Shown: positions 133-27,600 of the stretch, one piece after another
Position numbering within the stretch: the stretch's first letter is position 1
Layout: every line of letters starts with the position of its first letter
Source: Pavona decussata
Taxonomy: Eukaryota
Reading direction: 5' to 3'
Length of the DNA stretch: 64,000 nucleotides
Assembly (NCBI GenBank): GCA_977016875.1
Contig: CDRNST010000114.1
Location: 682,001-746,000, forward strand
Notes under the pieces: model-generated
What the model was told of the DNA's origin: nothing
Seen by the model: only the letters and a program-made list of their open reading frames with translations
Databases searched by the model: none
Program-made: the position numbers and the translations under genes

Positions 133-164
133 AGTAAAGATTTTTAAAGCTCTATTAAACTCAC

Positions 165-776
165 CTGCAATTTCATTTTTCGTAAAGAGATGAATACCAG
201 GATGCAAAATATTATCAAACAGAGGACAAGCACAGCTATGACAGATACCGCCAAAGTTTTTTGCTCTGCAAAATAAGCTTGGCGATAAACGAGTACGTGA
301 GTATCTTGAAGATCGATATGAAAGAGAGTTGAACAGGACAAAAATATAAGGACAAAACAGACAACCCAATCAATAATAACTATGGCGACGGCTTTTTCGC
401 TTGTCTTCCAGGTCAAATATCGCAGGCCAAATGTAAGCGCCAGAAAAACGTTTACCAGAAGCACCAGCATGGCGGTGAGATTGAGCGCCATGAAGAGCCG
501 AGCCATGAAAAAGGTTATAATCGCCAAAATCTTTCCCTTGTACCAGCTCACTTCTAGAATGCTAAACACCAAGTACATAGGCATGTTGATGAGGGCCGTA
601 AGGAGATCTACCAGCGCAAGATTAGCAATCAGTATGTTTGGATAAGTGCGAAGCTTCCTGAACCGTGCGAGAATACCAAGAATCGACCCATTGCTAAGTA
701 TGCAGAAGAGGATTAACGTTATTAGAAATCCGGCGTTGGAGATCGTAGTGAGGAGGGACTTGGGGATTTCAGGCAT
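165..776 (-). CDS. Class A (rhodopsin-like) GPCR, exon encoding TM1-TM5; gene continues beyond the left edge of the window
   Basis: ORF 144..809 has five hydrophobic segments, SNGSI (TM1 GN motif), LRTYPNILIANLALVD (ICL1/TM2 LAxxD), LRY in ICL2 and the TM4 Trp. First ATG is at 776. Donor CAG|GTGAGT at 165/164 follows TM5; possible acceptor TTTATCAG| at 791/790. Confidence 0.85.
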
Positions 777-1239
777 GATCTTTTCGTGGACTGATAAATA
801 CGTGTTCAAATGATGCCAACGGAAAATATTCTGATTTACGCTTGTCTCGATTGTTCTTTATCTATCAAACTGAACTAATCCTATATCCGAGAGATAATTT
901 GAAATTTTGCAGGGTATACAATAACGAAATTTCTGCCTCTTTATGGAGAACAGAACTCAGCAGCTGTAGATATCAACAAAACAGTTCGCAGATTTCGTTA
1001 CAAAAGAAACAGTGAAGACAACGTTTCCTCAAAATTTCCGTCCATCTGTGGTCCCCAGTTAAATTCCTACAAATCCTTCATTCCTATTGGCTCCTGAGCA
1101 GTCATTAATTTGTCATATTCACCCACGTCTGAGACGATTAGCCTTCCAAGAAGAAATCATAGTGCATGCGCGAAATGCAAAACAGCTGTTTTTGAAGCCA
1201 TTTTTTAAAATAGTCTCAATATATGTGTCATTGAGCTGG

Positions 1240-3125: not shown

Positions 3126-3131
3126 GTCTTA

Positions 3132-3537
3132 GGGGCTGTTTACATGGAGGAAGATCCTAGCACTAGGAAGATTCTAGAGGGCGGATCAACCTAGCGCCAT
3201 ATAGTCTGTCATATGTTTTCTGTATTAGGTTTACATGCAAAAGGTCGAACTTGGCCCTAGTGCTAGGATCTTTCTAGCGATATGATCTTCCTAGCTGAGA
3301 GATAGGAAGATCCTAGCACCATGTAAACTACCTTCGCTCGGAAGATCCTAGTACTAGGAACAAACATGGCGGCAGCCGGGCGTTCAATTGCTAAAGGCGG
3401 ACAATTTTTTCTCTTTTCCTTCTCCACTTGGTAACCACCTCGATCGAAATTTCTGCATGTAAACTAAACGGAAAGTTGTTTCGCCTTCTAGGATCTTCCT
3501 TGTGCTAGGAACTTCCTCCCTCCATGTAAACAGCCCC
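3132..3537. mobile_element. PIF/Harbinger-type MITE
   Basis: TIR GGGGCTGTTTACATGGAGG / CCTCCATGTAAACAGCCCC, TTA duplication on both sides, internal GAAGATCCTAG repeats. Confidence 0.88.
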
Positions 3538-5060
3538 TTAATAACTGGTTAGATCATGCTGTTACATGGCGTATTGAGACACAATGTGTCCCTTGCCCCC
3601 ACCTAACGTCGACAGCGTTAAAAATATGACAATGAAACTTTTAGGGTATATATTACGTTCGAGTGACGTCACGTGGCATGAAAATTACGTCATTTGTTTT
3701 ACACATCCGCCATCTTGGATCGACCGTCTTGGATTCGTCGTTTTCTCAAAAACCTCGGAAAAACGTCAGAATTAGTCAAAACCAATAAAAACGCTAAACT
3801 ATAATATAAATGTAAAAGTCATAACAATAAACTTTAATTTTTTAAAAAAAAAATCCAAATTTTGAAAAACATGGCTATCAAAATTTTGTCACCACCCCAT
3901 CCCAGGCCAGTTGACTGTGGGCTCAGAAATTTGCTGACGTTGCCATACAGCAAAGAAAACGTGAAGGTAGGCTTATTTTTCAGATCCCAGTTACTCAGAC
4001 GAAATACCGCAGCTAGAGCGGTCCACATCGAACGAGTCACGTTATACGTGTTTCCACCCTTTTCCTCTTATTCTTCAAAAACTCATTAACAACCCATCGA
4101 ATGGTCGATAATACATCACGTGAAGTGACTTTATATCAATAAACCTTTTCCTTATTAGTATGCGGTGTTTTATCAGCTCATAAAACACTCCTCATTAGTA
4201 TGCCTTGTTTTTCTCCTATGCTAATTTCCAACGTTCACAAAAGTATAGTTGTCATGAACTCAATTGACAAATGCTTTTCCAGAAATGTTTTTGAAGCCGT
4301 TGAAAAACTCGCACCACGTGTTTTATCGGGTCTAAAACCGATAAAACACTCCTGCTCGTTTTTTAAACATTACTTCTCTACAATCATTTTAAGCATTTTA
4401 AATTGTAGAAATTGTATAATTTAAAAAGATTTTAAATTTCTAATTCTTTAAAATATAAAAATAAGATCTCATTTTCTCGTATTCAAAGTGACAATTACTC
4501 TATAAACCAATTTACATAGTTTTAATTTTCCTTATAGTAGAAAACAAAATAAAAAATTATAAATCAAAAAGCTGTAAAGCAAAATTACATTTTTGATCTG
4601 GATTACAAATGGAATTGGTAAAATGACTCACAGGCCCTTTTGGCCATCCTCGCAGAAACCTCTAATATGCCCAGGAAGGTTTGATTATCTTCGAAAGTTA
4701 ACATAAAAATAATTATCCTCTACTGGCCGCAGTAACAAAGCTACGGAATACTTCGCTGTGGTTCAAGCGTAGCTTAACCAATTATTTCAACACGGTGCGG
4801 TGGGTTTAAATTGGATTTTTCTTAAAGAAAGGAAGTTCAGTGGAGAGTTAGCATCATAAGTGGCAGACGTATCGAGGTAACCTCAAACAGCATTCATTCC
4901 ACATTTTATTCAGTGGCTTTCACGGGCTGTGAATTCCCCATCAATCCAGCGTTGCCTACCAATATTATAACTAGATAGTTCATTGTTGTTAGGATCTCGG
5001 TTATGTTTGTGATAGTGCGGTTTGTTTTTTGCCGTCTAGCTAAAAATTGTTGTTTCTAAT

Positions 5061-5229
5061 ACAGTGGAGCCTTGATTTAACGAACCTCTATATAACGAAG
5101 TCCTCTATAAAAAGAACGATGTTGCTCAGCCCAGCCAAATAAATGTATGGAATAGAACCTCGATATCGCATAACGAACCAGTTTGCCAAGTCCCTTGGCC
5201 CTTCGTTAAATCGAGGTTCCCGGCTCTGA
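5061..5229. mobile_element. Tc1/mariner-type MITE present once in every array unit (unit 1 copy)
   Basis: TA-CAGTGGA(A/G)CCT(C/T)GATTTAACGAA ... TTCGTTAAATCGAGGTTCC(ACTG). Other copies at ~8241, 11141, 14524, 17405, 20814. Confidence 0.8.
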
Positions 5230-6295
5230 TAGGTTGTTTCATGTTTTTGGCAGGTTCAGAGTTAAGTTTGCCAATTCATAGTTTCTGTTGTTCCGATCAA
5301 AATTTAATTTTGTATTTGGGTAATTATTTTTGTTTCAGATCAACTTTATTTAACCCACTGGGTTATTTGGCCCCTCAGTTCGAAGTTATTTTTCTACCGA
5401 ATTGCTGTTTACTCTTGGATCAAAATATTTTTGTTATTGAGCTTGAGATATTTTTATTGCTCTCCTTTATTTATGTATCTATTTGCAGATTTGTTAATTA
5501 ATTAATTAATTAATTAATTAATTAGTTAGTTAATTCGTTAAATTCTTCCTTAGGTTGTTTTTGTCATTTGCAACTCCATGCTATTTTTACCATTCGAGGA
5601 TTGTTTTATTGCTCTTGGCATTTTATTGTCAAACTTATTTGTATATATTTATACATCGCTCTCTTTTATTTACGTATTTATTTTATCTATTTTTAATTAA
5701 ATTAGCCATTTTTTCCCTCAGGGTTGGGTTGTTTCTGTTGCTCGCGCATTGTGTAATCTTGTTGTCAACCTTATAAGTATAAATACTACTTTTCACGCGC
5801 TCTGATGTAGCTACTCAAACTCCATTAGTATTGATATTTCGTCCCCAGCATTTCGCTGGATTTCGCACACGATTTATTTCCCAAAGTGTCAGAAATAAAC
5901 TCAGTGACTGATTGATGTTGGCTATTCACTGATTTGGTATATACTAAAAACCAGTATTCACCTTAGCGTCATGAATGAACGTGGTAGATATTTAGATCGC
6001 CACTCTGTGGTTCGGAAAATATCCATAATTATCCGAACTCCAATTCAGTACTAAATAATTGCTAAATATCAAGGGGTATCCAAACAGGGCTTTTTGATGA
6101 TTGTTTCTTGAATGTTCACACGTTTCCTCATCCTTTTCAAATTCCATTTGGAATTTTAAACATTGAATATTTCGCTGTTGGGTTGTTTTTGAAGCTGGTC
6201 TTCCGAATTTGTTTCTACCCGGGTTGTTTTTTGTCAACCGTATGATGTAGATGAGATGCCTCATTTGGCCTTCTTTCAGAAGCAATTAGTTTAAT

Positions 6296-6772
6296 TAGAG
6301 CGGTTTCCAATAGGACATTTTCACTATGGCGTCATTTGACTACAACTACCAGAATCCTTCAGTTTTTTGTTTTCTCATGCTAATTAGAGCTATTGTTCTT
6401 TGCTCTCCACTGGGATTACAAAATTTGAATTTGGAAAGGAAAACAAAATGAATTCTGGTGGTTGTAGTCAAATGACGCCATCATGAAAATGGCCTATTGA
6501 GTGTCGTAAAACCAAAACCAAAGTAATTACTCTGGCCAATCGCAAAAGATGTAAACAACACAACGAGCCAATCAGAATTCGAAGCAAATACATGTAACTG
6601 GCACCAAGCGCGGGAAAACGCGTGCGGCCAAAACACGATTGGTTTGGGTTTGGATTCCCATTGGTTGAGAAAGTGCAGTGGTGCGAGCTTTGTTAACCAA
6701 TCACAGAGCGTAGTAATGCAAAACCAAACTAAACGCAAAATTAATTTCGACACTCAATTGAAAACTGCTCTA
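6296..6772. mobile_element. Nested MITE pair in array unit 1 (same insertion in unit 5 at 18645-19121)
   Basis: Outer TIR TAGAGCGGTTTCCAAT..TGAGTGTCG / CGACACTCAATTGAAAACTGCTCTA, split by an inner element at 6311-6496 with TIR core ATGGCGTCATTTGACTACAAC / GTTGTAGTCAAATGACGCCAT. Absent from units 2, 3, 4 and 6. Confidence 0.85.
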
Positions 6773-9540
6773 TAAAGAAATGCGTTAATTCGTTTAACTA
6801 TAAATTAACGTAACATCTTGGCTCTATTACGCACACAACAAATATGACCGCACAATGGCGTAAGCCAATAAAGTTGATTTTGGCGGGCCGGTCTAGCATA
6901 CTCGTTTAGGGCGGGTCTTCCATTCAGATGTAATTATTTTCCTTTATAAACGAGAACATTAATGTCAACCTAACATTAGTGTCCACCTATTCTAATAATT
7001 ATTGAATAGAAAGAAAATAAATTTGCGTGCATGGTAATTAATTCGGTGCATTTTCAAGTTGACGTTTAATTGAATCGATTAATTTCTACTCCGGGACATG
7101 CGACAATTGCGAATCGCGATCGTGCTTGCAATGGTTGTGAGTCAGGGAACAAACTAGATCGACCACCAGTGACTCAGAAGGTATTTCTGTTTTCAGTTGT
7201 TATTTTAAAGCGATTCTCCATTTCCTTTTGTAGATAATCCCATATGCATTTAAATTCTAATTACGACAAGGTCAATACGCAATGCAAAAATTAATTTTGT
7301 AGATCTGCACCAAGACAGTGATTCAGAAACAGATAATTGTTTTTGGCCCATAGCCTTACCAAACATTGTTTCGAGGCTTTTAAAGTCTTAGATTTAATTC
7401 AGGTTGATTCAAAAGAGAGTTCACTAAAGAATACTGCGAAAATAAGTACGACGAGCCGCTCTTACTCTGAAATGCTGTGACCGAAGGCGTCTTTTAGAGG
7501 GTCCATTTAGATGTCGGGTCACTTTAAGATGCATACAAAGAGTAGTAGACGTGAAAATATCCAAAAAAGGTGTAATGGAATGAGAAACAATTTTTTCTAC
7601 TTTTCGGAAAAAAGATTTTCAACTTCTAAGTCTTTAAAATATAAAAATAAGATCTCATTTTCTTGTATTCAAAGTGACCGTTACTCTATAAACCAATTTA
7701 CATAATTTTCCTTATAGTAGAAAACAAAATAAAAAATGATAAATCAAAAAAACTGGAAAGCAAAATTACATTTTTGATCTGGATTAAAAATGGAATGGGT
7801 AAATGACTCAAAGGCCCCTTTGGCCATCCTCGCAGAAACCTCTAAAATGTTCAGAGAGGTTTGATTATCTTCGAAAATTAACATAAAAATAATTATCCTC
7901 CACTGGCCGCAGTAACAGAGCTACGGAATACTTCGCTGTGGTTCAAGCGTAGCTTAACCAATTATTTCAACACGGTGCGGTGGGTTTAAATTGGATTTTT
8001 CTTAAAGAAAGGAAGTTCAGTGGAGAGTTAGCATCATAAGTGGCAGACGTATCGAGGTAACCTCAAACAGCATTCATTCCACATTTTATTCAGTGGCTTT
8101 CACGGGCTGTGAATTCCCCATCGATCCAGTGTTGCCTACCAATATTATAACTAGATAGTTCATTGTCGTTAGGGTCTGGGTTATGTTTGTGAAAGTTGGT
8201 TTGTTTTTTGCCGTCTAGCTAAAAATTGTTGTTTCTTATACAGTGGAACCTCGATTTTACGAATCTCTATATAACGAAGTCCTCGATAAAACGAACGATG
8301 TTGCTCAGCCCTGCCAAATAAATGTATGGAATAGAACCTCGATATAGCATAACGAACCAGTTTGCCTTGTCCCTTGGCACTTTGTTTAATCGAGGTTCCA
8401 CTGATAGGTTGTTTCATGTTTTTGGCAGGTTCAGAGTTAAGTTTGCCAATTCATAGTTTCTGTTGTTCCGATCAAAATTTAATATTGCATTTCGGTAATT
8501 ATTTTTGTTTCAGATCAACTTTATTTAACCCACTGGGTTATTTGGCCCCTCAGTTTGAAGTTATTTTTCTACCGAATTGCTGTTTACTCTTGGATCAAAA
8601 TATTTTTGTTATTGAGCTTGAGATATTTTTATCGCTCTCCTTTACTTACATATCTATTTGCAGATTTGTTAATTAATTAATTAGTTAATTCGTTAAATTC
8701 TTCCTTAGGTTGTTTTTGTCATTTGCAGCTCCATGCTATTTTTACTATTTCGTGGATTGTTTTTTCGCTCTTGGCATTTTATTGTCAAACTTATTTGTAT
8801 ATATTTATACGTCGCTCTCTTTTATTTGCGTATTTATTTTATCTATTTTTAATTAAATTAGCCATTTTTTCTCTTAGGGTTGGGTTGTTTCTGTTGCTCG
8901 CGCTTTGTGTAATCTTGTTGTCAACCTTATTAGTATAAATACTACTTTTCGCGCGCTCTGATGTAGCTACTTAAACTCTATTAGTATTGATAGTTTGCTC
9001 CCAGCATTTCGCTGGATTTCGCACACGACTTATTTCCCAAAGTGTCAGAAATAAACTCAGTGACTGATTGATGTTGGCTATTCACTGGTTCGGTATATAC
9101 TAAAAACCAGTATTCTCCTCAATGTCATGAACAAATGTGGTATAGATATTTACCTCGCCACTCTGTGGTTCGGAAAACATCCATAATTATCCAAACTCAA
9201 ATTCAGTACTAAATAATTGCTAAATATCAAGGGGGTATCCAAACAGGGCCTTTTGATGATTGTTTCTTGAATGTTCACACATGTTCCCCCATCCTTTTCA
9301 AATTGCATTTGAAATTTTTAAACATTTAAGATTTCGCTGTTGGGTTGTTTTTGAAGCTGGACTTCCGAATTTGTTTCTACCCGGGTTGTTTCTTGTCAAC
9401 CGTATGATGTAGATGAGATGGCCAATTAGGCCTTCTTTCAGAAGCAATTACTTTAATTATAAAGAAATGCGTTAATTTATATAATTATAAATCAACGTAA
9501 CATCTTGTATCTATTACGCGCACAACAAATATGACCACAC

Positions 9541-9862
9541 AATGGCGTAAGCCAATAAAGTCGATTTTGCGGAGTGGGTCTAGCATGGACCAATCAGAAC
9601 CCGTTTAGGGCGGGCCTTCTATTCAGATGTAATTACTTTACTTTAAAAACGAAGACATTAATGTCCACCTGACATTAGTGTCCACATATTCTAATAATAT
9701 AGAAAGAAAATAAATTTGCGTGCATGATAATTATTCGGTGCATTTTCAAGTTGACGTTTAATTGAATCGATTAATTTCTACTCCGTGACATGGGGCAGTT
9801 GCGAATCGTGGTCGCAATGGTTGTGAGTCAGGGAACAAACCAGATCGACCACCAGTGACTCA
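9541..9862. promoter_or_regulatory. Promoter/enhancer-like motif cluster repeated in each array unit (unit 2 copy)
   Basis: ATGGCG, GCCAAT, GACCAATCAG and GGGCGGG within 75 bp, then an inverted AP-1-like pair TGAGTCA (9824) / TGACTCA (9856). Motif match only. Confidence 0.4.
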
Positions 9863-12055
9863 GAAGGTATTTCTGTTTTCAGTTGTTATTTTCAAGCGTT
9901 TTTCTCCATTTCGTTTTGTAGATAATCCCATATTCATTTAAATTCCAAACGTCAAGGTCAATACGCAATGCAAAAATTAATTTTGTAGATCCGCACCAAG
10001 ACAGTAAAACAGAGAATCGTTTTAGGCCCATAGCCTTACCAAACATTGTTTCGAGGCTTTTAAAGTCTTAGATTTAATTCAGGTTGATTCAAAAGAGAGT
10101 TAACTAAAGAATACTGCAAAAATAGGTAGCCTCAATTTTGTCTCAAAGAGGAAAAGGTCATCCTCACAAGATGTTTCGCCCTTTCTCTCTCTCGCTCTCT
10201 CTCTTTCGCTAATGAAAGTGTGTTTGTCGGTCAGTTGAAGAGGAAGACCGAGAAAAGAAACGTTCACATATTAATTGACAAATAATTTCAAGTGAGCATT
10301 GATTATACTTTAGCCCGAAACTATCATTTTACGAAGAGCCGCTCTTACTCTGAAATGCTGTGACCGAAGGCGTCTTTTAGAGGGTCCATTTAGATGTCGG
10401 GGCACTTCAAGATGCATACAAAGAGTAGTAGACGTGAAAATATCCAAGAAAAGGTGTAGGCAATGGAATGAGAAACAATTGTTTTCTACTTTTTGGAAAA
10501 AAGATTTTCAACTTTTAAGTCTTTAAAATATAAAAATAAGATCTCATTGTCTTGTATTCAAAGTGACCGTTACTCTATAAACCAATTTACCTAGTTCAGT
10601 TTAATTTTCCTTATAGTAGAAAACAAAATAAAAAATGATAGATCAAAAAACTGTAAAGCAAAATTACATTTTTGATCTGGATTACAAATGGAATTGGTAA
10701 AATGACTCACAGGCCCCTTTGGCCATCCTCGCAGAAACCTCTAAAATGACCAGGAAGGTTTGATTATCTTCGAAAATTAACATAAAAATAATTATCCTCT
10801 ACTGGCCGCAGTAACAAAGCTACGGAATACTTCGCTGTGGTTCAAGCGTAGCTTAACCAATTATTTCAACACGGTGCGGTGGGTTTAAATTGGATTTTTC
10901 TTAAAGAAAGGAAGTTCACTGGAGAGTTAGCATCATAAGTGGCAGACGTATCGAGGTATCCTCAAACAGCATTCATTCCACATTTTATTCAGTGGCTTTC
11001 ACGGGCTGTGAATTCCCCATCAATCCAGCGTTGCCTACCAATATTATAACTAGATAGTTCATTGTCGTTAGGATCTCGGTTATGTTTGTGATAGTGCGGT
11101 TTGTTTTTTGCCGTCTAGCTAAAAATTGTTGTTTCTAATACAGTGGAGCCTTGATTTAACGAACCTCTATATAACGAAGTCCTCGATAAAACGAACGATG
11201 TTGCTCAGCCCAGCCAAATAAATGTATGGAATAGAACCTCGATATAGCATAACGAACCAGTTTGCCTTGTCCCTTGGCCCTTCGTTAAATCGAGGTTCCC
11301 GGCACTGATAGGTTGTTTCATGTTTTTGGGAGGTTCAGAGTTAAGTTTGCCAATTCATAGTTTCTGTTGTTCCGATCAAAATTTGATATTGCATTTGGGT
11401 AATTATTTTTGTTTCAGATCAACTTTATTTAACCCACTGGGTTATTTGGCTCCTCAGTTCGAAGTTATTTTTCTACTGAATTGTTTTTTACTCTTGGATC
11501 AAAATATTTTTGGTATTGAGCTGTTAATTTTACCATTGAGATATTTTTATTGTTCTCCTTTATATATGTATCTATTTGCAGATTTTTTAATTAATTAATT
11601 AGTTAGTTAATTAATTAATTAATTAATTAATTAGTTAATTTGTTAAATTTTTCCTAAGGTTGTTTTTGTCATTTGCAGCTCCATGCTATTTTTACCATGT
11701 CGCGGATTGTGTTTTCGCTCTTGGCATTTTGTTGTCAAAGTTATTTTTATACATGTATACCTTGCTCTCTTTTATTGATTTATTTATTTTATCTAATTGT
11801 TAATTAATTAGTCACTTTTTCCTGTTGGGTTGTTTTTGTGGCTCCCGTTATTAGTATAAATACTACTTTTCGCGCACTCAAACTCCATTAGTATTGATAT
11901 TTTGCTCCCAGCATTCCCCTGGATTTCGCACACAATTTATTTAGCAAATTGGCAGAAATAAACCCAGTGGCTGATTGGTACTTGCTCTTCACTGGTTTGG
12001 TTTATACTAAAAAGCAGTATTCACCTCAATTTCAAGAATGAACTTTGTAGATATA

Positions 12056-12295
12056 TTTATTTATTTTATTTATTTTATTTTATTTTATTAGACTTCGCCT
12101 TCTAAAACAAAACTATAAACAGAACATGACAACGTGAACAGAAAATAAACAAGTACTGGGTTAATGACCACAACAGCTAGCGCCAGTTACCGTGGGCCCA
12201 AGATTAACAAAGTTCTAAACACTCGAATAAGATAGTAAAATATAGTAAACTAATAACAACACGAAATAGGTTCTGAAAGGTGGCGTGGCATATTA
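12056..12295 (-). mobile_element. Unit-3-specific insertion, probably a 5'-truncated LINE 3' end with (AAAAT)n tail
   Basis: About 240 bp absent from the other units; begins with (TTTTA)n; flanked by ATATTTA-like direct repeats. Confidence 0.55.
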
Positions 12296-12341
12296 TATTT
12301 ACCTAGCCACTCTGTGGTTCGGAAAATATCCATAATTATCC

Positions 12342-12582
12342 GGGCCGGGTTGTTCGAAAGCCGATTAACGCTAATCCACGATTAAAAGTTAATGAAGGTT
12401 TTCATCGTCGTTCGTTAAAATGGGTTTAAACGCTAATTTCAAGCTAAAGGTAAAGAAAAGTCTAAGTCAAAACTGAGGGCCGAAAATCTTTTGGAAGAAC
12501 CTTTGTTGATTAGCAATTAAACTCGAATCAAAGTTTGCGTTAATCCAGGATTAGCTTAATCGAGCTTTGAACAACTGGGCCC
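12342..12582. mobile_element. Unit-3-specific MITE
   Basis: TIR GGGCCGGGTTGTTCGAAAGCCGATTAACGCTAATCC / GGATTAGCTTAATCGAGCTTTGAACAACTGGGCCC; related element at ~57551-57985. Confidence 0.8.
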
Positions 12583-15500
12583 GAACTCCAACTCAGTACT
12601 AAACAATTCCTAAATATCCAGGGGGGTATTCAAACAGCGCCTTTTGATGATTGTTTCACATATGTTCCCCCATCCTTTTCAAATTGCATTTGAAATTTTA
12701 AACATTTAAGATTTCGCTGTTGGGTTGTCTTTGAAGCTCGTCTTCCGAATTTTTTTCTTCCCGGGTTGTTTTTTGTCAACCGTATGATATAGATGAGATG
12801 GCCAATTAGGCTTTCTTTCAGAAGCAATTACTTTAATTATAAAGAAGTGCGTTAATTTATGTAATTATAAATCAACGTAACATCTTGTCTCTATTACGTG
12901 CACAACAAATATGACTACACAATGGCGTAAGCCAATAAAGTTGATTTTGCCGGGCGGGTTTAGCATGGACCAATCAGAACCCGTTTGGGGCGGGCCTTCT
13001 ATTCAGATGTAATTACTTTACTTTATAAACGAGAACATTAATGTCAACCTAACATTAGTGTCCACCTATTCTAATAATTATTGAATAGAAAGAAAATAAA
13101 TTTGCGTGCATGGTAATTAATTCGGTGCATTTTCAAGTTGACGTTTAATTGAATCGATTAATTTCTACTCCGTGACATGCGAAAATTGCAAATCGTGCTC
13201 GCAATGGTTGAGTCAGGGAACAAACTAGATCGACCACCAGTGACTCAGAAGGTATTTCTGTTTTCAGTTGTTATTTTAAAGCGATTCTCCATTTCCTTTT
13301 GTAGATAATCCCATATGCATTTAAATTCTAATTACGACAAGGTCAATACGCAATGCAAAAATTAATTTTGTTGATCCGCACCAAGACATTGAAACAGATA
13401 ATCGTTTTTGGCCCATAGCCTTACCAAACATTGTTTCGAGGCTTTTAAAGTCTTAGATTTAATTCAGGTTGATTCAAAAGAGAGTTCACTAAAGAATACT
13501 GCGAAAATAAGTAGCCTCAATAATATTTGTCTCAAAGAGGAAAAGGTCACCCTCACAAGATGTTTCGCCCTTTCTCTCTCTCTCTTTCTCTAGTGAAAGT
13601 GTGTTTGTCGGTCGGTTGAAGAGGAAGAGCGAGAAAAAAAAAGTTCACAAATTAATTGGCAAATAATTTCAAGTGAGCATTGATTATACTTTATCTCGTA
13701 ACTGTCATTTTACGACGAGCCGCTCTTACTCTGAAATGCTGTGACCGAAGGCGTCTTTTAGAGGGTCCATTTAGATGTCGGGTCACTTCAAGATGCATAC
13801 AAAGAGTAGTAGACGTGAAAATATCCAAAAAAAGGTGCAATGGAATGAGAAACAATTGTTTTCTACTTTTTGGAAAAAAGATTTTCAACTTCTAAGTCTT
13901 TAAAACATAAAAGTAAGATCTCATTTTCTTGTATTCAAAGTGACCGTTACTCTATAAACCAATTTACCTAGTTCAGTTTAATTTTCCTTATAGTAGAAAA
14001 CAAAATAAAAAATGATAGATCAAAAAACTGTAAAGCAAAATTACATTTTTGATCTGGATTACAAATGGAATTGGTAAAATGACTCACAGGCCCATTTGGC
14101 CATCCTCGCAGAAACCTCTAAAATGTTCAGGGAGGTTTGATTATCTTCGAAATTTAACATAAAAATAATTATCCTCCACTGGCCACATTAACAGAGCTAC
14201 GGAATACTTCGCTGTGGTTCAAGCGTAGTTTAACCAATTATTTCAACACGGTGCGGTGGGTTTAAATTGGATTTTTCTTAAAGAAAGGAAGTTCAGTGGA
14301 GAGTTAGCATCATAAGTGGCAGACGTATCGAGGTAACCTCAAACAGCATTCATTCCACATTTTATTCAGTGGCTTTCATGGGCTGTGAATTTCCCATCAA
14401 TCCAGTGTTGCCTACCAATATTACATGTATAACTAGATAGTTCATTGTCGTTAGGATCTCGGTTATGTTTGTGATAGGGTGGTTTGTTTTTTGCCGTCTA
14501 GCTAAAAATTGTTGTTTCTAATACAGTGGAGACTTGATTTAACGAACCTCTATATAACGAAGTCCTCGATAAAACGAACGATGTTGCTCAGCCCTGCCAA
14601 ATAAATGTATGGAGTAGAACCTCGATATAGCATAACGAACCAGTTTGCCTTGTCCCTTGGCACTTCGTTAAATCGAGGTTCCACTGATAGGTTGTTTCAT
14701 GTTTTGGCAGGTTCAGAGTTGTGTTTGCCAATTCATAGTTTCTGTTGTTCCGTTAAAAACGTAATTTTGCATTTGGGCAATTCTTTTTGTTTCAGACCAA
14801 CTTTATTTAACCCACTGGGTTATTTGGCCCCTCAGTTCGAAGTTATTTTTCTACCGAGTTGTTTATCGCTCTTGGATCAAAATATTTTTGTTATTGAGCT
14901 GTTAATTTTGCCATTGAGATATTTTTATCGCTCTCCTTTATTTTTGTATGTATTTGCAGATTTGTTTATTAATTGATTAATTAGTTTATTAATTAGTTAA
15001 TTTGTTGAAGTTTTCCTTAGGTTGTTTTTGTCATTTGCAGTTTCATGCTAATTTTACCATTCGCGGATTGTTTTTTCGTTCTCTTTTATGTACGTATTTA
15101 TTTTATCTATTTTTAATTAAATTAGCCATTTTTTCCCTTAGGGTTGGGTTGTTTCTGTTGCTCGCGCTTTGTGTAATCTTGATGTCAACCTTATTAGTAT
15201 AAATACTTCTTTTCGCGCGCTCTGATCTAGCTACTTAAACTCTATTGGTATTGATATTTTGCTCCCAGCATTTCGCTGGATTTCGCACACGACTTATTAC
15301 CCAAAGTGTCAGAAATAAACTCAGTGACTGATTGATGTTGGCTATTCACTGGTTTGGTATATACTAAAAACCAGTATTCTCCTCAATGTCATGAACAAAT
15401 GTGGTATAGATATTTACCTCGCCACTCTGTGGTTCGGAAAACATCCACAATTATCCGAACTCAAATTCAGTACTAAATAATTGCTAAATATCAAGGGGAT

Positions 15501-18500
15501 ATCCAAACAGGGCCTTTTGATGATTGTTTCTTGAATGTTCACACATGTTCCCCCATCCTTTTCAAATTGCATTTGAAATTTTTAAACATTTAAGATTTCG
15601 CTGTTGGGTTGTTTTTGAAGCTGGTCTTCCGAATTTGTTTCTACCCGGGTTGTTTCTTGTCAACCGTATGATGTAGATGAGATGGCCAATTAGGCCTTCT
15701 TTCAGAAGCAATTACTTTAATTATAAAGAAATGCGTTAATTTATGTAATTATAAATCAACGTAACATCTTGTCTCTATTACGCACAAAACAAATACGACC
15801 ACACAATGGCGTAAGCCAATAAAGTTGATTTTGCCGGGCGGATCTAGCATGGACCAATCAGAACCCGTTTAGGGCGGGCCTTCTATTCAGATGTAATTAC
15901 TTTACTTTAAAAACGAGGACATTAATGTCCACCTGACATTAGTGTTCACATATTCTAATCATTATTGAATAGAAAGAAAATAGATTTGCGTGCATGGTAA
16001 TTAATCCGGTGCATTTTCAAGTTGACGTTTAATTGAATCGATTAATATCTACTCATGACATGGGACAGTTGCGAATCGTGGTCGCAATGGTTGTGAGTCA
16101 GGGAACAAACCAGATCGATCACCAGTGACTTAGAAGGTATTTCTGTTTTCAGTTGTTATTTTAAAGCAATTCTCCATTTCCTTTTGTAGATAATCCCATA
16201 AACATTTAAATTCTAATTACGACCAGGTCAATACGCAATGCAAAAATTAATTTTGTAGATCTGCACCAAGACAGTGATTCAGAAACAGATAATCGTTTTT
16301 GGCCCATAGCCTTACCAAACATTGTTTCGAGGCTTTTAAAGTCTTAGATTTAATTCAGGTTGATTCAAAAGAGAGTGAACTAAAGAATACTGCGAAAATA
16401 AGTAGCCTCAATTTGTCTCAAAGAGGAAAAGGTCACCCTCACAAGATGTTTCGCCCTTTCTCTCTCTCTCTCTCTTTCTCTGATGAAAGTGTGTTTGTCG
16501 GTCGGTTGAAGAGGAAGAGCGAGAAAAGAAACGTTCACAAATTAATTGGCAAATAATTTCAAGTGAGCATTGATTATACTTTATCTCGTAACTGTCATTT
16601 TACGACGAGCCGCTCTTACTCTGAAATGCTGTGACCGAAGGCGTCTTTTAGAGGGTCCATTTAGATGTCGGGTCACTTCAAGATGCATACAAAGAGTAGT
16701 AGACGTGAAAATATCCAAAAAAGGTGTAATGGAATGAGAAACAATTTTTTCTACTTTTCGGAAAAAAGATTTTCAACTTCTAAGTCTTTAAAATATAAAA
16801 ATAAGATCTCATTTTCTTGTATTCAAAGTGACCGTTACTCTATAAACCAATTTACCTAGTTCAGTTTAATTTTCCTTATAGTAGAAAACAAAATAAAAAA
16901 TGATAGATCAAAAAACTGTAAAGCAAAATTACATTTTTGATCTGGATTACAAATGGAATTGGTAAAATGACTCACAGGCCCATTTGGCCATCCTCCCAGA
17001 AACCTCTAAAATGTTCAGGAAGGTTTGATTATCTTCGAAAATTAACATAAAAATAATTATCCTCCACTGGCCGCAGTAACAGAGCTACGGAATACTTCGC
17101 TGTGGTTCAAGCGTAGCTTAACCAATTATTTCAACACGGTGCGGTGGGTTTAAATTGGATTTTTCTTAAAGAAAGGAAGTTCAGTGGAGAGTTAGCATCA
17201 TAAGTGGCAGACGTATCGAGGTAATCTCAAACAGCATTAATTCCACATTTTATTCAGTGGCTTTCACGGGCTGTGAATTCCCCATCAACCATTGTTGACT
17301 ACCAATATTATAACTAGACAGTTCATTGTCGTTAGGATCTCGGTTATGTTTGTGATAGTGCAGTTTGTTTTTTGTCGTCTAGCAAAAAATTGTTGTTTCT
17401 AATACAGTGGAACCTCGATTTAACGAACCTCTATATAACGAAGTCCTCGATAAAACGAACGATGTTGCTCTGCCCAGCCAAATAAATGTGTATGGAATAG
17501 AACCTCGATATAGCATAACGAACCAGTTTGCCAAGTCCCTTGGCCCTTCGTTAAATCGAGGTTCCCGGCACTGATAGGTTGTTTCATGTTTTTGGCAGGT
17601 TCAGAGTTAAGTTTTCCAATTCATAGTTTCTGTTGTTCCGATCAAAATTTAATTTTGCATTTGGGTAATTCTTTTTGTTGCAGATCAACTTTATTTAACC
17701 CACTGGGTTATTTGACCCCTCAGTTCGAAGTTATTTTTCTACCGAATTGCTTTTCACTCTTGGATCAAAATATTTTTGTTATTGAGCTTGAGATATTTTT
17801 ATCGCTCTCCTTTATTTATGTATCTATTTGCAGATTTGTTAATTAGTTAATTAATTAATTAATTAATTAATTAATTAGTTAATTCGTTAAATTTTTCCTT
17901 AGGTTGTTTTTGTCACTGCAGCTCCATTCTATTTTTACCATTTCGTGGATTGTTTTTTCGCTCTTGGCATTTTATTGTCAAACTTATTTGTATATATTTA
18001 TACATCGCTCTCTTTTATTTACGTATTTATTTTATCTATTTTTAATTAAATTAGCCATTTTTTCCCTTAGGATTGGGTTGTTTCTGTTGCTCGCGCTTTG
18101 TGTAATCTTGTTGTCAACCTTATTAGTATAAAAACTACTTTTCGCGCGCTCTGATGAAGCTACTTAAACTCTATTAGTATTGATAGTTTGCTCCCAGCAT
18201 TTCGCTGGATTTCGCACACGACTTATTTCCCAAAGTGTCAGAAATAAACTCAGTGACTGATTGATATTGGCTATTCACTGGTTTGGTATATACTAAAAAC
18301 CAGTATTCACCTTAGCGTCATGAATGAACGTGGTAGATATTTAGATCGCCACTCTGTGGTTCGGAAAATATCCATAATTATCCGAACTCCAATTCAGTAC
18401 TAAATAATTGCTAAATATCAAGGGGTATCCAAACAGGGCCTTTTGATGATTGTTTCTTGAATGTTCACACGTTTCCTCATCCTTTTCAAATTCCATTTGG

Positions 18501-18644
18501 AATTTTAAACATTTAATATTTCGCTGTTGGGTTGTTTTTGAAGCTGGTCTTCCGAATTTGTTTCTACCCGGGTTGTTTTTTGTCAACCGTATGATGTAGA
18601 TGAGATGCCTAATTAGGCCTTCTTTCAGAAGCAATTAGTTTAAT

Positions 18645-19121
18645 TAGAGCGGTTTCCAATAGGACATTTTCACTATGGCGTCATTTGACTACAACTACTA
18701 GAATCCTTCAGTTTTTTGTTTTCTCATGCTAATTAGAGCTATTGTTCTTTGCTCTCCAGTGGGATTACAAAATTTGAATTTGAAAAGGAAAACAAAATGA
18801 ATTCGGATGGTCTTAGTCAAATGACGCCATCATGAAAATGGCCTATTGAGTGTCGTAAAACCAAAACCAAAGTAATTACTCTGGCCAATCGCAAAAGATG
18901 TAAACAACACAACGAGCCAATCAGAATTCGAAGCAAATACATGTTACTGGCACCAAGCGCGGGAAAACGCGTGCGGCCAAAACACGATTGGTTTGGGTTT
19001 GGTTTCCCATTGGTTGAGAAAGTGCAGTGGCGCGAGCTTTGTTAACCAATCACAGAGCGTAGTAATGCAAAACCAAACTAAAGGCAAAATAAATTTCGAC
19101 ACTCCATTGAAAACTGCTCTA
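18645..19121. mobile_element. Nested MITE pair in array unit 5
   Basis: Near-identical to 6296-6772 and at the same position in the unit. Confidence 0.85.
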
Positions 19122-22100
19122 TAAAGAAATGCGTTAATTCGTTTAACTATAAATTAACGTAACATCTTGTCTCTATTACGCACGCAACAAATATGACCGC
19201 ACAATGGCGTAAGCCAATAAAGTTGATTTTGGCGGGCCGGTCTAGCATGGACCAATCAGAACTCGTTTAGGGCGGGTCTTCTATTCAGATGTAATTATTT
19301 TCCTTTATAAACGAGAACATTAATGTCAACCTAACATTAGTGTCCACCTATTCTAATAATAATTGAATAGAAAGAAAATAAATTTGCGTGCATGGTAATT
19401 AATTCGGTGCATTTTCAAGTTGACGTTTAATTGAATCGATTAATTTCTACTCCGTGACATGCGACAATTGCGAATCGTGCTTGCAATGGTTGTGAGTCAG
19501 GGAACAAACTAGATCGACCACCAGTGACTCAGAAGGTATTTCTGTTTTCAGTTGTTATTTTAAAGCAATTCTCCATTTCCTTTTGTAGATAATCCCATAT
19601 GCATTTAAATTCCAAACGTCAAGGTCAATACGCAATGCAAAAATTAATTTTGTAGATCCGCACCAAGACATTGAAACAGATAATCGTTTTTGGCCCATAG
19701 CCTTACCAAACTTTTTTTTCGAGGCTTTTAAAGTCTTAGATTTAATTCAGGTTGATTCAAAAGAGAGTTAACTAAAGAATACTGCGAAAATAAGTAGCCT
19801 CAATAATATTTGTCTCAAAGAGGAAAAGGAAACCCTCACAAGATATTTCGCCCTTTCTCTCTCTCGCTCTCTCTCTTTCTTTAATGAAAGTGTGTTTGTC
19901 GGTCAATTGAAGAGGAAGACCGAGAAAAAAAACGTTCACAAATTAATTGGCAAATAATTTCAAGTGAGCATTGATTATACTTTAGCCCGAAACTATCATT
20001 TTACGACGAGCCGCTCTTACTCTGAAATGCTGTGACCGAAGGCGTCTTTTAGAGGGTCCATTTAGATGTCGGGTCACTTCAAGATGCATACAAAGAGTAG
20101 TTGACGTGAAAATATCCAAGAAAAGGTGTAGGCAATGGAATGAGAAACAATTGTTTTCTACTTTTTGGAAAAAAGATTTTCAACTTCTAAGTCTTTAAAA
20201 TATAAAAATAAGATCTCATTTTCTTGTATTCAAAGTGACCGTTACTCTATAAACCAATTTACCTAGTTCAGTTTAATTTTCCTTATAGTAGAAAACAAAA
20301 TAAAAAATGATAGATCAAAAAACTGTAAAGCAAAATTACATTTTTGATCTGGATTACAAATGGAATTGGTAAAATGACTCACAGGCCCATTTGGCCATCC
20401 TCCCAGAAACCTCTAAAATGTTCAGGAAGGTTTGATTATCTTCGAAAATTAACATAAAAATAATTATCCTCTGCTGGCCGCAGTAACAGAGCTACGGAAT
20501 ACTTCGCTGTGGTTCAAGCGTAGCTTACCCAATTATTTCAACACGGCGTGGTGGGTTTAAATTGGATTTTTCTTAAAGAAAGGAAGTTCAGTGGAGAGTT
20601 AGCATCATAAGTGGCAGACGTATCGAGGTAACCTCAAACAACATTCATTCCACATTTTATTCAGTGGCTTTCACGGGCTGTGAATTCCCCATCAATCCAG
20701 CGTTGCCTACCAATATTATAACTAGATAGTTCATTGTCGTTAGGATCTCGGTTATGTTTGTGATAGTGCGGTTTGTTTTTTGCCGTCTAGCTAAAAAATT
20801 GTTGTTTCTAATACAGTGGAGACTTGATTCAACGAACCTCTATATAACGAAGTCCTCGATAAAAAGAACGATGTTGCTCAGCCCAGCCAAATAAATGTAT
20901 GGAATAGAACCTCGATATTGCATAACGAACCAGTTTGCCAAGTCCCTTGGCCCTTTGTTAAATCAAGGTTCCCGGCACTGATAGGTTGCTTCATGTTTTT
21001 GGGAGGTTCAGAGTTAAGTTTGTTAATTCATAGTTTCTGTTGTTCCGATCAAAATTTAATTTTGCATTTGGGTAATTATTTTTGTTTCAGATCAACTTTA
21101 TTTAACCCACTGGGTTATTTGGCCCCTCAGTTTGAAGTTATTTTTCTACCGAATTGTTTATCGCTCTTGGATCAAAATATTTTTGTTATTGAGCTGTTAA
21201 TTTTGCCATTGAGATATTTTTATCGCTCTCCTTTATTTATTTATCTATTTGCAGATTTGTTTATTAATTAATTAATTGATTAATTAATTAGTTAAATAAT
21301 TAGTTAATTCGTTAAAGTTTTCCTTAGGTTGTTTTTGTCATTTGCAGTTCCATGCTAATTTTACCATTCGCGGATTGTTTTTTCGCTCTCTTTTATCTAC
21401 GTATTTATTTTATCTATTTTTAATTAAATTAGCCATTTTTTCCCTTAGGGTTGGGTTGTTTCTGTTGCTCGCGCTTTGTGTAATCTTGATGTCAACCTTA
21501 TTAGTATAAATACTTCTTTTCGCGCGCTCTGATGTAGCTGCTTAAACTCTATTGGTATTGATATTTTGCTCCCAGCATTTCGCTGGATTTCGCACACGAC
21601 TTATTTCCCAAAGTGTCAGAAATAAACTCAGTGACTGATTGATGTTGGCTATTCACTGGTTTGGTATATACCAAAGACCAGTATTTTCCTCAATGTCATG
21701 AACAAATGTGGTATAGATATTTACCTCGCCACTCTGTGGTTCGGAAAACATCCATAATTATCCGAACTCAAATTCAGTACTAAATAATTGCTAAATATCA
21801 AGGGGGTATCCAAACAGGGCCTTTTGATGATTGTTTCTTGAATGTTCACACATTTCCCCCCATCCTTTTCAAATTGCATTTGAAATTTTTAAACATTTAA
21901 GATTTCGCTGTTGGGTTGTTTTTGAAGCTGGTCTTCCGAATTTGTTTCTACCCGGGTTGTTTCTTGTCAACCGTATGATGTAGATGAGATGGCCAATTAG
22001 GCCTTCTTTCAGAAGCAATTACTTTAATTATAAAGAAATGCGTTAATTTATGTAATTATAAATCAACGTAACATCTTGTCTCTATTACGCACACAACAAA

Positions 22101-23865
22101 TACGACCACACAATGGCGTAAGCCAATAAAGTTGATTTTGCCGGGCGGATCTAGCATGGACCAATCAGAACCCATTTAGGGCGGGCCTTCTATTTAGATG
22201 TAATTACTTTACTTTAAAAACGAGGACATTAATGTCAACCTGACATTAGTGTCCACATATTCTAATAATATAGAAAGAAAATAAATTTGCGTGCATGATA
22301 ATTATTCGGTGCATTTTCAAGTTGACGTTTAATTGAATCGATTAATTTCTACTCATGACATGGGGCAGTTGCGAATCGTGGTCGGAATGGTTGTGAGTCA
22401 GGAAACAAACCAGATGGACCACCAGTGACTTAGAAGGTATTTCTGTTTTCAGTTGTTATTTTCAAGCGATTCTCCATTTCGTTTTGTAGATAATCCCATA
22501 TTCATTTAAATTCCAAACGTCAAGTTCAATACGCAATGCAAAAATTAATTTTGTAGATCCGCACCAAGACAGTAAAACAGATAATCGTTTTAGGCCCATA
22601 GCCTTACCAAACATTGTTTCGAGGCTTTTAAAGTCTTAGATTTAATTCAGGTTGATTCAAAAGAGAGTTAACTCAAGAATACTGCGAAAATAAGTGGCCT
22701 CAATTTGTCTCAAAGAGGAAAAGGTCACCCTCACAAGATGTTTCGCCCTTTCTCTCTCTCTCTTTCTCTAATGAAAGTGTGTTTGTCGGTCGGTTGAAGA
22801 GGAAGACCGAGAAAAAAAACGTTCACAAATTAATTGGCAAATAATTTCAAGTGAGCATTGATTATACTTTATCTCGTAACTGTCATTTTACGACGAGCCG
22901 CTCTTACTCTGAAATGCTGTGACCGAAGGCGTCTTTTAGAGGGTCCATTTAGATGTCGGGTCACTTCAAGATGCATACAAAGAGTAGTAGACTTGAAACT
23001 ATCCAAGAAAAGGTGTAGGCAGTGGAATGAGAAACAATTTTTTCTCTTTTTGGAAAAAAATTGGGTCTGTCAAACGATGGGAACTAAAGCTTGCATAGGG
23101 TAGCTACAACGGTACCGTATTTCGTTAATAAAAAGTTATTAGACTCTGGTAGAACAAACGTCTTGGTTTAATAAACCACTAGTAAACAGAATTCCCTAAT
23201 TTTGTTTTAATCGTGCAATGTCGAGCTTAAATTGAAAACGGCCAAAGACAAAAGCGAGCGAAAGAATTGAGAAAGTGGCAAAAACACCTACTCCATGCCA
23301 AGAAGAACGAAATTTTGTCCTATCTACACCTGACTCTGTCTTTTTGAAATCAGTAATTGAATCTTAAGAAAAATCAGTACCTAGAACTCAACTTCAAGTT
23401 TGGCTTGGTTCCTTGCAAGGATAACCGGCCATTTTGTATGGAAATCGAATGGGGTTATAAAACAAATAATACCTTTCTCTTCCATGGAAATCTCACACAA
23501 GTTGGGTCGTGGCCAGCATAAATTTAGGTAGTATTAAGCAATGTTGTTCAGGTCGTTTGTTCTTGGCCGACATCTAAAAATAGTGGTTGTTTTGTAGCCA
23601 TAGACGGTTTGTTTTAATCTAATGCTTCCTCCCCTCTCATTGGTTGTTTCTTGGTCACGTGGTAGTAATCTATATTAATTTGTATCGATCCCATCAGAGT
23701 TTGTTGTGAATCAGATCAATGGACAAAAATAAAGGCTTTCTCTATAGCATGACAGAAATAAGTATTAAAACATGAAGAAACTTCTTCGTAATGTTTAAAC
23801 TGAGCTTTTAATTAATTAATTTAATTTAATTGTTTATAACACGTTTCACTGCACGAAAAAACGCC

Positions 23866-24211: not shown

Positions 24212-24658
24212 AAAAGAGCAAATCCAATTTTTCGTGCAGTGTTTATATCCATAAATCGCGAGGAGAACCGGGCAAACGGAAGAACGACTAAACAAACCAG
24301 AAACGAAACTTACTTAAATGACGACATATTTTACAATTATTCCATAAGCGCAGTTTGCATATGAGGTGATAGATAACCAACGAAGCTATCCAACAAGCGT
24401 CAGTGAAGTAATTGTTTTATTAAAAACCATATTAAAATATTGCTAGATCTTGCTGATTTCGCTTTTCTAGAACAACCAGAAGACAATTTAATGGACACTT
24501 TTTCTCGGGCATGGTATAATAGCTCATATACCCTGGCCGCTAAGCCAATCAAATCCCTGGAATTGCATTATACAACGATCCATCACTTCCATCAGTATTT
24601 AACTGATGGCACTTATTCCAAAAATACTTGTCCACTCCTGTTTGATTCTCTTTCAGGG

Positions 24659-27600
24659 ATGGGTGTTGCAAGATCGTCAAATGAAGTAGGATCTACCTCA
24701 TCGTCTCACACAAGGCTGACGTTGGGACTCGCCAGTATCGCATCCAAGATCAGGCTCATCCCTGAGGGGGGGTGGGGCTGGGTGATATGCGTCTCTGCGT
24801 TCTTCACTCAGTTAATCGTAATGGGAATTAACAACTCGTTTGGGATTCTTTTCACGACGCTATTGGAGGAGTTCAAAAAATCCAAAGCTGAAACTGGTAA
24901 TATACAATTAATTTAAAAAAAAATTGAAGTACAGTGGAAGCTCTCGTAAGCGGACACCTTCGGGACGCGAAAAAGATGTCCGTAACTGGAGCTGGCCACT
25001 TATGAGAATGTTCTCGTAAGCGGCCACTAGAGGTGTAAGGGATAGATGGCCGCTTACGGGAGCTTTACAAGCTAACAATAAACATTGGGAATTCCAAAAA
25101 AATACCACCGTATTAAATGATTTTTTGTTTGTTTGTTTTATTGCCTAATGCAAGGCCGCGATAATGGCGATAACTGTAATTAAACTCATCGTGAAGAACA
25201 GCGATGTGAGGTTAAAAGATTAAAATACGATTCAGAGACTAATGGGGTTTCCTTTCGGGTGTCCGCTTACGGCAGCTTAAAAACAAAGGAAAAGTCTAAA
25301 TCGTAAACCCTGAAAGTGTCCGCTGCTGCTTACGGGAATGTGTAAATATAGAGTTTGTATGGGAGTTCAAACGGGGTTCTGTGAAGACGATTCAATTAGA
25401 GCTCTCCGCTTACGAGACTGCCCGTTAAGAGAGCTTTCTGTATTAGCCAGATACTTATAGACATCTCAAAGCGATTTTCCCTTGCTCTCGACTAATACAT
25501 TGTTAAACCTCTTCCCCCAGCCTGGGTGGGCTCAGTCAGTGTGGGCGTCATGTATCTGTTTGGACCAATCACAAGCGGGCTGAGTGAAAGGTTCGGCTGC
25601 AGAGTCGTGGCATTCCTTGGAGGTTTCCTGTGCTTTCTGGGAATGCTTCTGACATCATTCGTGACTGACCTGCCAAAGCTCTACGTGACATACGGTGTTC
25701 TTTGGGGGGTAGGGTCGAGCTTTTGCTACTTCCCTACCCTGACCGCCCCCGGAGAGTACTTTTGTAATCGATTATCATTGGTGAATGGGATTGTTACCGC
25801 TGGTAAGTAAAAAATTTGTTTTGTAATAACTCTCATTGGTAGCATTTTTAAAGTGTATATGACAGATTTTTTTTATTTGTTTGATCAAATCTTCATGCTG
25901 TCCTCCCATGAAAATGGAACAAATTTTCTTTATACTAATACAGAATTATCGAGGACTAGAATTCTTACATGATAAGTAGTATTTGTGCCAAAATAGAGCT
26001 TATTTTTTGGACACAATTCCGATTCCAAGGAAAGGCAAAAAGTCACTTACGATATTTTTTGCAAATAAACCTTTACGACTGCTGCAAATTTAAGAATTAA
26101 TTTCTGTTCGTATTTCATCCGCTTTAGTGCGTGATGCAATCTTATCTCCTATGTAATCTAGTCCTCTAAAGAGGGCATATAATCTAAGTTCACCAAACTA
26201 CTGAACCCTGCAAACTTGTTTATTCCAAAACATATATGTACGCTATGCTTGCCTATGTTCTTCTTCAGGTAGTGGAATTGGCACATTGACATTCGGCCCA
26301 GTCCTCCAACACATTCTTCATCGTTACGGCCTGGCTACCTCACTGCGCATACTCAGTGGTGTATCCGTCCTGCTGATGCTGACAGCTTTGACGTACAAGC
26401 CGTTACGTTCGCCACTCGAAGAACTCTTTGAAGTGAGGAGGCATCAAGCGTCGTTTTTTGACGTGACAATTTGGCGGAACAAAGCCTTCTGCGTGTACAC
26501 AGCAGCTGTGTCTCTTTTTATGCTCGGATATTTCATTCCTTATGTTCATTTGGTAGGCGTCCTTTTATTTATTTATTTTATTTTTCAAGCCTAGTCATCT
26601 CCGCACTTCACAAAAATGTCTTTGCCTCTCACATTTTGCAACCAGTCAATTGTCAAAAATCCATACCCGTTTTCAGACATAAGACCATCCGGAATAGTAC
26701 CACGTCCATTTGGTAGACAACTGACTCGCGTTGGTTGTTCTACTTTTTGCTGTGCTTCACCGTGCTGACGAGAGCCAACCAGTTCGAAACAGCTGTCCAC
26801 GGTTGCATTTTTTGATTCTTGGTTTGGTCTCTATCATGTCGCTGTCGTGTTGAGTTTTCCAAGCAGTCAGATCAGCCTTGCAGTTATTTGAGCTACTTAA
26901 AATCTACACCCATTTTCAGATCAAAGAGGTTCAAAAGTTTTACCTTTAAGCTTACATAACGGAGCAACCCCCGGGACTTAGTTTTTGTCAAGGCTTTGAC
27001 ATAGTAAAATAAGCAAGGGACCGCACAACGAAAATGCTGCAAGTATACGTAGGATTTGTAAAAGATCTAATCAAAACAGAACAACTATAGTACTACTTAA
27101 TTAAGGTGCCTTTCGCGCGCATCAGAGTCAAAGATCTCAAGTCTCGTGTTGCAGAAGGAACACAATAAAACTGTAGAAACACACAGCAGTTTAGCATATA
27201 TTGAAACAAGTACCGGTTTGGTCAAAGTCTCTACTCCAAGAGTAGGCTGCCATTACAAAACTGGAAATTTGAAGGCATATGTCGATGGTTCAAGATCCCT
27301 CTATCCGTAATGCTGTTTCCTTAGACCAGCTCTTTAAATCCTCATTGCCTATCTCCACCTCCACTGGGAAGATGTGTGAAAAACTTAACGGGAAAGACCT
27401 TCGATGGAAAAGTACCTCCTCACCCAGGGGGATCGAAGGAGTAAAGTTCCCTGACTTTTTAGGCGAAGGAAAGCCCTGGATAGCGTTATCCAGTGAAGAA
27501 AAATAGGGAGCCTAAGCAACGACGACGGCAACGTCAACGAAAACGACACCTGAAAATATATCTTTATTTCATTTGCGCTACTCTGCGATTATTTCAACTC

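Follow-up and report, generated by a model that had tools for sequence, protein, structure and literature searches.

What is the 18.6-kb block of repeated DNA that separates a G-protein-coupled receptor (GPCR) gene from a divergently transcribed SLC16-type transporter gene in the coral Pavona decussata, how was it formed, and does it do anything for either of its neighbors? We addressed these questions in a 64-kb window of contig C114, the whole stretch of DNA analyzed here, and extended the searches to the entire 602-Mb assembly. By self-BLAST and MAFFT alignment, window positions 4423-23062 consist of six units (U1 to U6) arranged head-to-tail, as an initial annotation made from the DNA letters had described; its limits, 4425-23060, were right to within 2 bp. 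We are fairly confident that the array is a locus-specific, non-coding tandem segmental duplication that resembles a small macrosatellite. This is an ordinary and already known kind of genome structure.

When the whole window was compared with itself, collinear matches of 0.6-4 kb and 88-96% identity appeared at offsets of ~2.9-3.4 kb and multiples of these, and no comparable self-match was found outside the array. In the six-unit MAFFT alignment, pairwise identities range from 93.5 to 96.7% (Kimura two-parameter distances of 0.034-0.068, transition/transversion ratio of 1.19). A few large events account for the differences in unit length: U1 and U5 carry an insert of 473 bp and U3 has two of ~245 bp; U1 lacks 207 bp, and U4 and U6 share a deletion of 47 bp. 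The DNA of the array is AT-rich (35% G+C). Tandem Repeats Finder handles periods up to 500 bp and hence reports only short internal repeats.

As a first alternative, the unit could represent a known dispersed transposon or else a satellite that forms further arrays in the genome, an outcome that the initial annotation had itself singled out as fatal to its interpretation. Indeed, parts of the unit match hundreds to thousands of loci, and searches of the assembly with complete units are dominated by short dispersed repeats embedded in them. These multi-locus matches are, however, limited to repeats of 163-473 bp that resemble miniature inverted-repeat transposable elements (MITEs), whereas the BLAST searches with the DNA between them gave a different picture. 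Unit positions 1-622 have exactly six matches genome-wide, all inside the array; positions 800-1850 return the six copies and one old dispersed repeat at ~70-78% identity; and positions 1850-2889 return the six copies and two weak partial matches (68% and 77% identity). High-identity matches to the ~2.2 kb of the unit that lie outside the embedded repeats are thus restricted to the six copies at this locus. The 602-Mb assembly holds no dispersed full-unit copies, and the junction contexts reveal no terminal repeats at the unit ends, which carry an A-run only. We therefore rejected the unit as a transposable element, since only the embedded MITEs are dispersed, and also as satellite DNA, which is characterized by high copy number at several loci and not by six copies at one. 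Taken as a whole, this alternative has a negligible chance of being correct. Exact-pattern scans of metagenome contigs with invariant blocks of 31 and 33 nt also gave no match.

The ends of the array are informative with respect to its origin. Internal junctions read ...TTTTTGGA followed by AAAAAGATTTT; the left flank runs straight into AAAAAGATTTT, and the final unit closes with ...TTTTTGGAAAAAAAT before unique sequence resumes. The array amounts to six units plus ~8 bp, in which AAAAAGAT and AAAAAAAT form an A-rich microhomology with 7 of 8 positions alike. A first duplication between A-rich microhomologies 2.9 kb apart would leave exactly such a footprint, and its presence at both breakpoints supports the microhomology-seeded local amplification put forward earlier. 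The same annotation had drawn attention to the in-register ends of the array. These are real on both sides, but require no special explanation and add no further oddity, because an integral copy number results automatically from any tandem duplication and later unequal exchanges keep units whole.

The history that we propose would thus start from an intergenic segment of ~2.9 kb between the GPCR and SLC16 genes that already contained two old transposon remnants. This segment would first have been duplicated between AAAAAGAT and AAAAAAAT, would then have grown stepwise to six units, and would have continued to be reshuffled as misaligned units underwent unequal crossover and gene conversion.

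The order of growth can be followed through the embedded repeats, whose description as MITE remnants was borne out by the genome searches, all being real dispersed repeats. A 163-bp MITE (at least 783 candidates in the genome) and an old repeat of ~280 bp occur in every unit, and both therefore predate the amplification. A 473-bp MITE, with TAGAGCGGTTTCC and GAAAACTGCTCTA as its terminal inverted repeats, is found in U1 and at the identical site in U5, and in no other unit; the two copies are 97.3% identical, and the right 280 bp of the element have thousands of dispersed matches at 92-94%. Its distribution implies that it entered one unit of an existing array, and that this unit was copied again later. 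Taken together, the MITEs indicate that the array grew in several steps and not in one burst. Reintegration of a circle, which had also been suggested, is not needed, and the stepwise history disfavors it as the sole event.

Exchange between units is suggested by their kinship, which was followed in alignment windows of 300 columns: along each unit, the closest relative switches from one unit to another. U5 and U6 do not differ at all in columns 1-300, and U1 and U3 differ by 1% in columns 300-600. In the central part U1 pairs with U5 (1-5% difference), U2, U4 and U6 cluster together (0-3%) and U3 is distant from the others (up to 14-18%). Further on, U4 equals U6 in columns 2251-2550 (0%), U2 pairs with U6 in columns 3000-3450, and U1, U3, U4 and U6 group at the 3' end; small insertions and deletions repeat the same patchwork across the units. 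The unit lengths alternate, which prompted a simple model of three dimers, (AB)x3, but we rejected this model as a complete account, given that kinship shifts along the unit. The patchwork is what recurrent unequal crossover and gene conversion among units out of register would be expected to produce, and unequal crossover, invoked from the outset, fits both this mosaic and the MITE common to U1 and U5 only. Near-invariant blocks had been reported as well. A slight excess does exist, the longest invariant run measuring 66 bp against a 95% limit of 61 bp in shuffled alignments (P = 0.03), but it is barely above chance and recent conversion patches would explain such blocks equally well.

We also considered that the array could be an assembly artefact, i.e. 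a haplotype mis-join or an over-expanded repeat with fewer true copies. Allelic duplications are a known feature of coral assemblies prior to haplotype merging (PMC10236652), but the divergence among the six units is 3-7%, and they bear private or shared MITE insertions and deletions, for which two haplotypes are insufficient. Independent assemblies were consulted with open reading frames (ORFs) of the array as tags, by exact look-up in public ENA assemblies and by a word-based search of 5.8 billion proteins; this approach detects intact ORFs, so that units with broken ORFs stay invisible, and yields no counts per contig. An ORF of 86-123 residues that is open in all six units is represented in the public assemblies by four clusters with eleven distinct sequences. 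Six versions identical to those of the window lie on public contigs of up to 0.75 Mb, and on a second set, whose contigs reach 1.75 Mb, there are five further versions and, unchanged, that of U4. In addition, all four contigs have a 64-residue ORF that crosses the unit-to-unit junction, and the version in the second set differs by one residue.

The two sets differ in make-up, five of the ORFs of the second set ending in the 'ELEIFL' type (86 residues) and one in the long 'ELLILPL' type, versus three and three here. The protein of the neighboring Kv channel gene differs between the sets at 3 of 455 residues, and from further relatives by ~4%. According to these tags, a head-to-tail array is also present in a closely related haplotype, individual or species, where it comprises at least six distinct units of other make-up. 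Unit composition thus differs between the assembly sets, which touches only indirectly on the copy-number polymorphism that the initial annotation had considered likely. A second set with at least six distinct and differently composed units argues against an artefact and for turnover of the array, and we regard an artefact as very improbable. The word-based protein search found no relatives of the shared ORF outside the array in the two assembly sets, but nothing can be concluded from its absence in more distant relatives, in which an ORF that arose by chance would not be expected to remain intact.

Macrosatellites are locus-specific tandem arrays of kilobase-sized units, such as D4Z4, DXZ4 and RS447 in humans. 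Units of at least 1 kb in head-to-tail order, confined to one locus, are also what we find here, and the coral array further resembles macrosatellites in its concerted evolution by unequal exchange and in a unit make-up that differs between assemblies. Unlike them, it has six copies only, is AT-rich without CpG-island character, and contains no ORF or gene per unit. Pervasive tandem gene duplication has been described in stony coral genomes (Noel et al. 2023, PMC10236652). The array shares with these gene duplicates (PMC10236652) local tandem duplication followed by divergence, but its unit is intergenic and has no protein-coding gene, and the flanking genes are not duplicated in it. The locus is one more instance of tandem duplication, which is known to be prevalent in corals, and changes no concept, but provides a clean and well-dated case of how a kilobase-scale non-coding array originates and turns over in a coral genome, combining breakpoint microhomology, stepwise growth timed by MITE insertions and patchy homogenization. 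At ~95% similarity between units, caution is required for annotation and read mapping at this locus.

The coding content of the units is consistent with this assignment. The longest ORF of the array has 123 residues, in agreement with the earlier statement that no long ORF is present. No Pfam family was recognized above threshold in ten ORFs of the array, which gave one chance-level match, to Frag1 (16 bits versus a cut-off of 30.3). In the shared ORF, variable sites are spread over the three codon positions as 9, 11 and 13, and the pooled ratio of non-synonymous to synonymous polymorphism (pN/pS) is 0.55, calculated from very few sites. Its 3' third is frameshifted between two classes of units, each comprising half of them, and U4 lacks a start codon. 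By our estimate, about one ORF of this length is expected by chance per 3 kb at this composition, and we judged it to be non-coding. A tandem cluster of protein-coding genes was rejected, in view of the short ORFs, the lack of a Pfam family and of codon-position bias, and the frameshifted 3' end.

The array could instead be a non-coding RNA locus, composed of tandem units that give rise to long non-coding RNAs or to small RNAs of the PIWI-interacting (piRNA) type. Promoter-like blocks (see below), the lack of coding capacity, embedded transposon fragments and the persistence of the array across two assembly sets would all be compatible with such a role. On the other hand, Rfam recognizes no family at gathering score in 4423-23062, U5 and U6 yield only chance-level matches even at E <= 1 (E = 0.39-0.74), and no tRNA lies within the array; the transposon content is modest and of mixed orientation, and the array is indistinguishable from neutral DNA. 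We thus hold an RNA-producing function to be improbable, and see the array, in all likelihood, as a neutral by-product.

Even so, one plausible effect of the amplification would be that each unit multiplies a promoter-like block and a splice-donor motif that point at the SLC16 gene. Promoter motifs had been noted in the units, and consensus matches are indeed present in all of them, in the order GCCAATA, GACCAATCAG, GGGCGGG, TTGACGTTT, TGAGTCAGG and an invariant AGAAG/GTATTTCTG on the + strand; the one loss is that of GACCAATCAG in U1. As a whole, the block shows no excess conservation, with 0.06-0.33 of columns variable per 60 columns versus 0.13 overall, and the CpG observed/expected ratio is ~1 throughout the region, which does not discriminate promoters.

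The location of the array between the 5' ends of divergent GPCR and SLC16 genes, part of the earlier description, was confirmed by matches to 7tm_1 and to the major facilitator superfamily (MFS), obtained by searching the exons of both genes singly. The MFS exons that start at 24.66 kb have the monocarboxylate transporters MCT10, MCT8, MCT2 and MCT1 (SLC16) as their best solved relatives, and carry a GGWGW motif, which is typical of the SLC16 family. The first coding exon has a good splice acceptor, tctctttcag/GG, 2 nt ahead of the ATG, which implies that a non-coding leader exon of the 5' untranslated region should lie upstream. The SLC16 promoter and this leader exon may have been part of the duplicated segment. 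Each unit would then be a promoter with its non-coding leader exon, and the six would act as tandem alternative first exons that splice to the acceptor at ~24656. The motif set, ordered alike in every unit and closed by the invariant AGAAG/GTATTT donor, speaks for this possibility, as does the position of the U6 donor motif, 2.2 kb from the acceptor; moreover, in the intergenic DNA of the 64-kb window, it is only in the units that two CCAAT boxes lie within 100 bp of a GC box. In contrast, the block is no better conserved than the remaining unit, its motifs were picked by eye, and the 1.6 kb between array and exon have a CCAAT and E-box candidate of their own at ~23640-23660. We thus put this arrangement forward tentatively, as an alternative that is rather unlikely. 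In the same 1.6 kb, at 23880-24240, we note a palindromic motif (TTTGATTCGAATCAAAG-like) in about six degenerate copies.

Tandem variable first exons, which are coding, are known from the protocadherin and UGT1A loci, where their usage is documented. The coral units are similar in that promoter-like motifs and a 5' splice-site motif are repeated in tandem upstream of a common acceptor exon, but the candidate exon would be non-coding, the units are ~95% alike, and they are known from sequence motifs. If the block does drive the SLC16 transporter, the length of the array would be a heritable and fast-mutating dosage knob. That the six units are SLC16 promoter and leader-exon modules, whose number unequal crossover would alter so as to provide copy-number-variable control of dosage, is more doubtful still than their use as alternative first exons.

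For the GPCR gene, on the minus strand, the corresponding proposal is that the array supplies alternative promoters together with first coding micro-exons. The 5' end of this gene faces the array across 3.6 kb, its ATG is closely preceded by a possible acceptor (tatttatcag), CCAAT and GC boxes function in both orientations, and a TATA-like motif is present on the minus-strand side of the block. However, the GPCR exon brings an in-frame ATG of its own, in reasonable context and with the first transmembrane segment directly after it, and the minus-strand ORFs are short (45-90 residues, counted from an ATG) and vary from unit to unit; the longest has no Pfam match, and none is recorded as a called protein. 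This idea has even less support than the one that concerns SLC16, and we consider it very unlikely.

Several observations weigh against a neutral, locus-specific duplication as the whole explanation. The clusters of a GC box and two CCAAT boxes hint that the unit is more than featureless DNA. Along the unit, variable sites show over-dispersion (P = 0.0005), which, together with the slight excess of invariant runs, could reflect some constraint instead of conversion patches. The array in the second assembly set is known through ORF tags only, and the copy number of six in the sequenced individual is that of the assemblies. Coordinates of the array, its units and the features discussed are collected in Table 1.

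Table 1. Features of the tandem array and of the adjacent coding exons (window positions unless otherwise indicated; a slash within a motif marks the splice site).
Feature	Position	Strand	Remarks
Whole array, six units and ~8 bp of A-rich microhomology at right end	4423..23062	+	self-BLAST, MAFFT, junction contexts
Unit U1, 3186 bp	4423..7608	+	bears 473-bp MITE; private 207-bp deletion at 7446/7447; 12-bp deletion taking out second CCAAT box
Unit U2, 2889 bp	7609..10497	+	'basic' unit without young insertions
Unit U3, 3377 bp	10498..13874	+	most divergent, 9-18% from others at alignment columns 1051-2250
Unit U4, 2888 bp	13875..16762	+	nearest U6 and U2 across central part
Unit U5, 3407 bp	16763..20169	+	nearest U1 (96.7%); has the 473-bp MITE of U1; first 300 aligned columns as U6
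Unit U6, 2893 bp	20170..23062	+	last unit; terminates in GGAAAAAAAT, then unique DNA
163-bp MITE, U2	8241..8403	unassigned	in every unit; 23-nt terminal inverted repeats; genome matches ~80% identical
163-bp MITE, other units	5062-5228, 11141-11307, 14524-14686, 17405-17573, 20814-20980
Old dispersed repeat, ~280 bp, U2	8946..9230		in every unit; genome matches ~70-78% identical (at least 194 candidates)
473-bp MITE, U1	6298..6770		TA target duplication; imperfect terminal inverted repeats
473-bp MITE, U5	18647-19119
Two young dispersed repeats, ~245 bp each, U3 only	12054-12301, 12337-12582		91-95% identical elsewhere; at least 4691 candidates
ORF of 86-123 residues, open in all six units	5241-5501, 8416-8676, 11320-11598, 14605-14976, 17586-17846, 20993-21271	+
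Promoter-like block and donor motif, U2	9536..9872	+	consensus motif matches only; CCAAT 9551, CCAAT 9588, GGGCGGG 9608, TGACGT 9751, TGAGTCA 9824, AGAAG/GTATTT 9862
Homologous blocks, other units	6849-7186, 12916-13257, 15800-16142, 19198-19541, 22107-22442	+
Candidate donor AG/GT sites	7181, 9867, 13252, 16137, 19536, 22437	+
GPCR (rhodopsin family), first coding exon	147..809	-	7tm_1, E = 4e-10; probable ATG at 774
GPCR, second coding exon	L040 3125-3670, upstream of window	-
SLC16/MCT-like transporter, first coding exon	24657..24897	+	further exons to ~30.47 kb

Around the array, the best solved relatives of the GPCR are aminergic and trace-amine receptors, and the Kv channel gene, which has a single exon, is located further to the right, past the SLC16 gene. 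Within an SLC16 intron, a Type I hammerhead ribozyme at 26759-26803 (+) was recognized by Rfam (RF00163, 39.8 bits versus a gathering score of 34), and is probably part of a retrozyme or of a Penelope-associated repeat. Three tRNA-like sequences on the minus strand, at 28602-28674, 45413-45482 and 45674-45746, match the Rfam tRNA model with 33-37 bits; the latter two lie within a two-copy direct repeat (45329-45746, minus strand, period of 243 bp, 81.6% identity). A run of 172 N at 57003-57174 corresponds to an assembly gap or a mask. On the other side of the array, 0.5-0.8 kb to its left, positions 3600-3950 have a CpG observed/expected ratio of 2.05, the highest of the first 36 kb, with five TGACGT/ACGTCA sites and an E-box, and may represent a promoter or enhancer, perhaps that of the GPCR gene. 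Past the 3' end of this gene, an ORF upstream of the window, at L040 495-773 (+), i.e. G000:C114:675495-675773, resembles the last transmembrane segment and tail of SLC16 proteins, so that the GPCR gene may be flanked by SLC16 paralogues on both sides.

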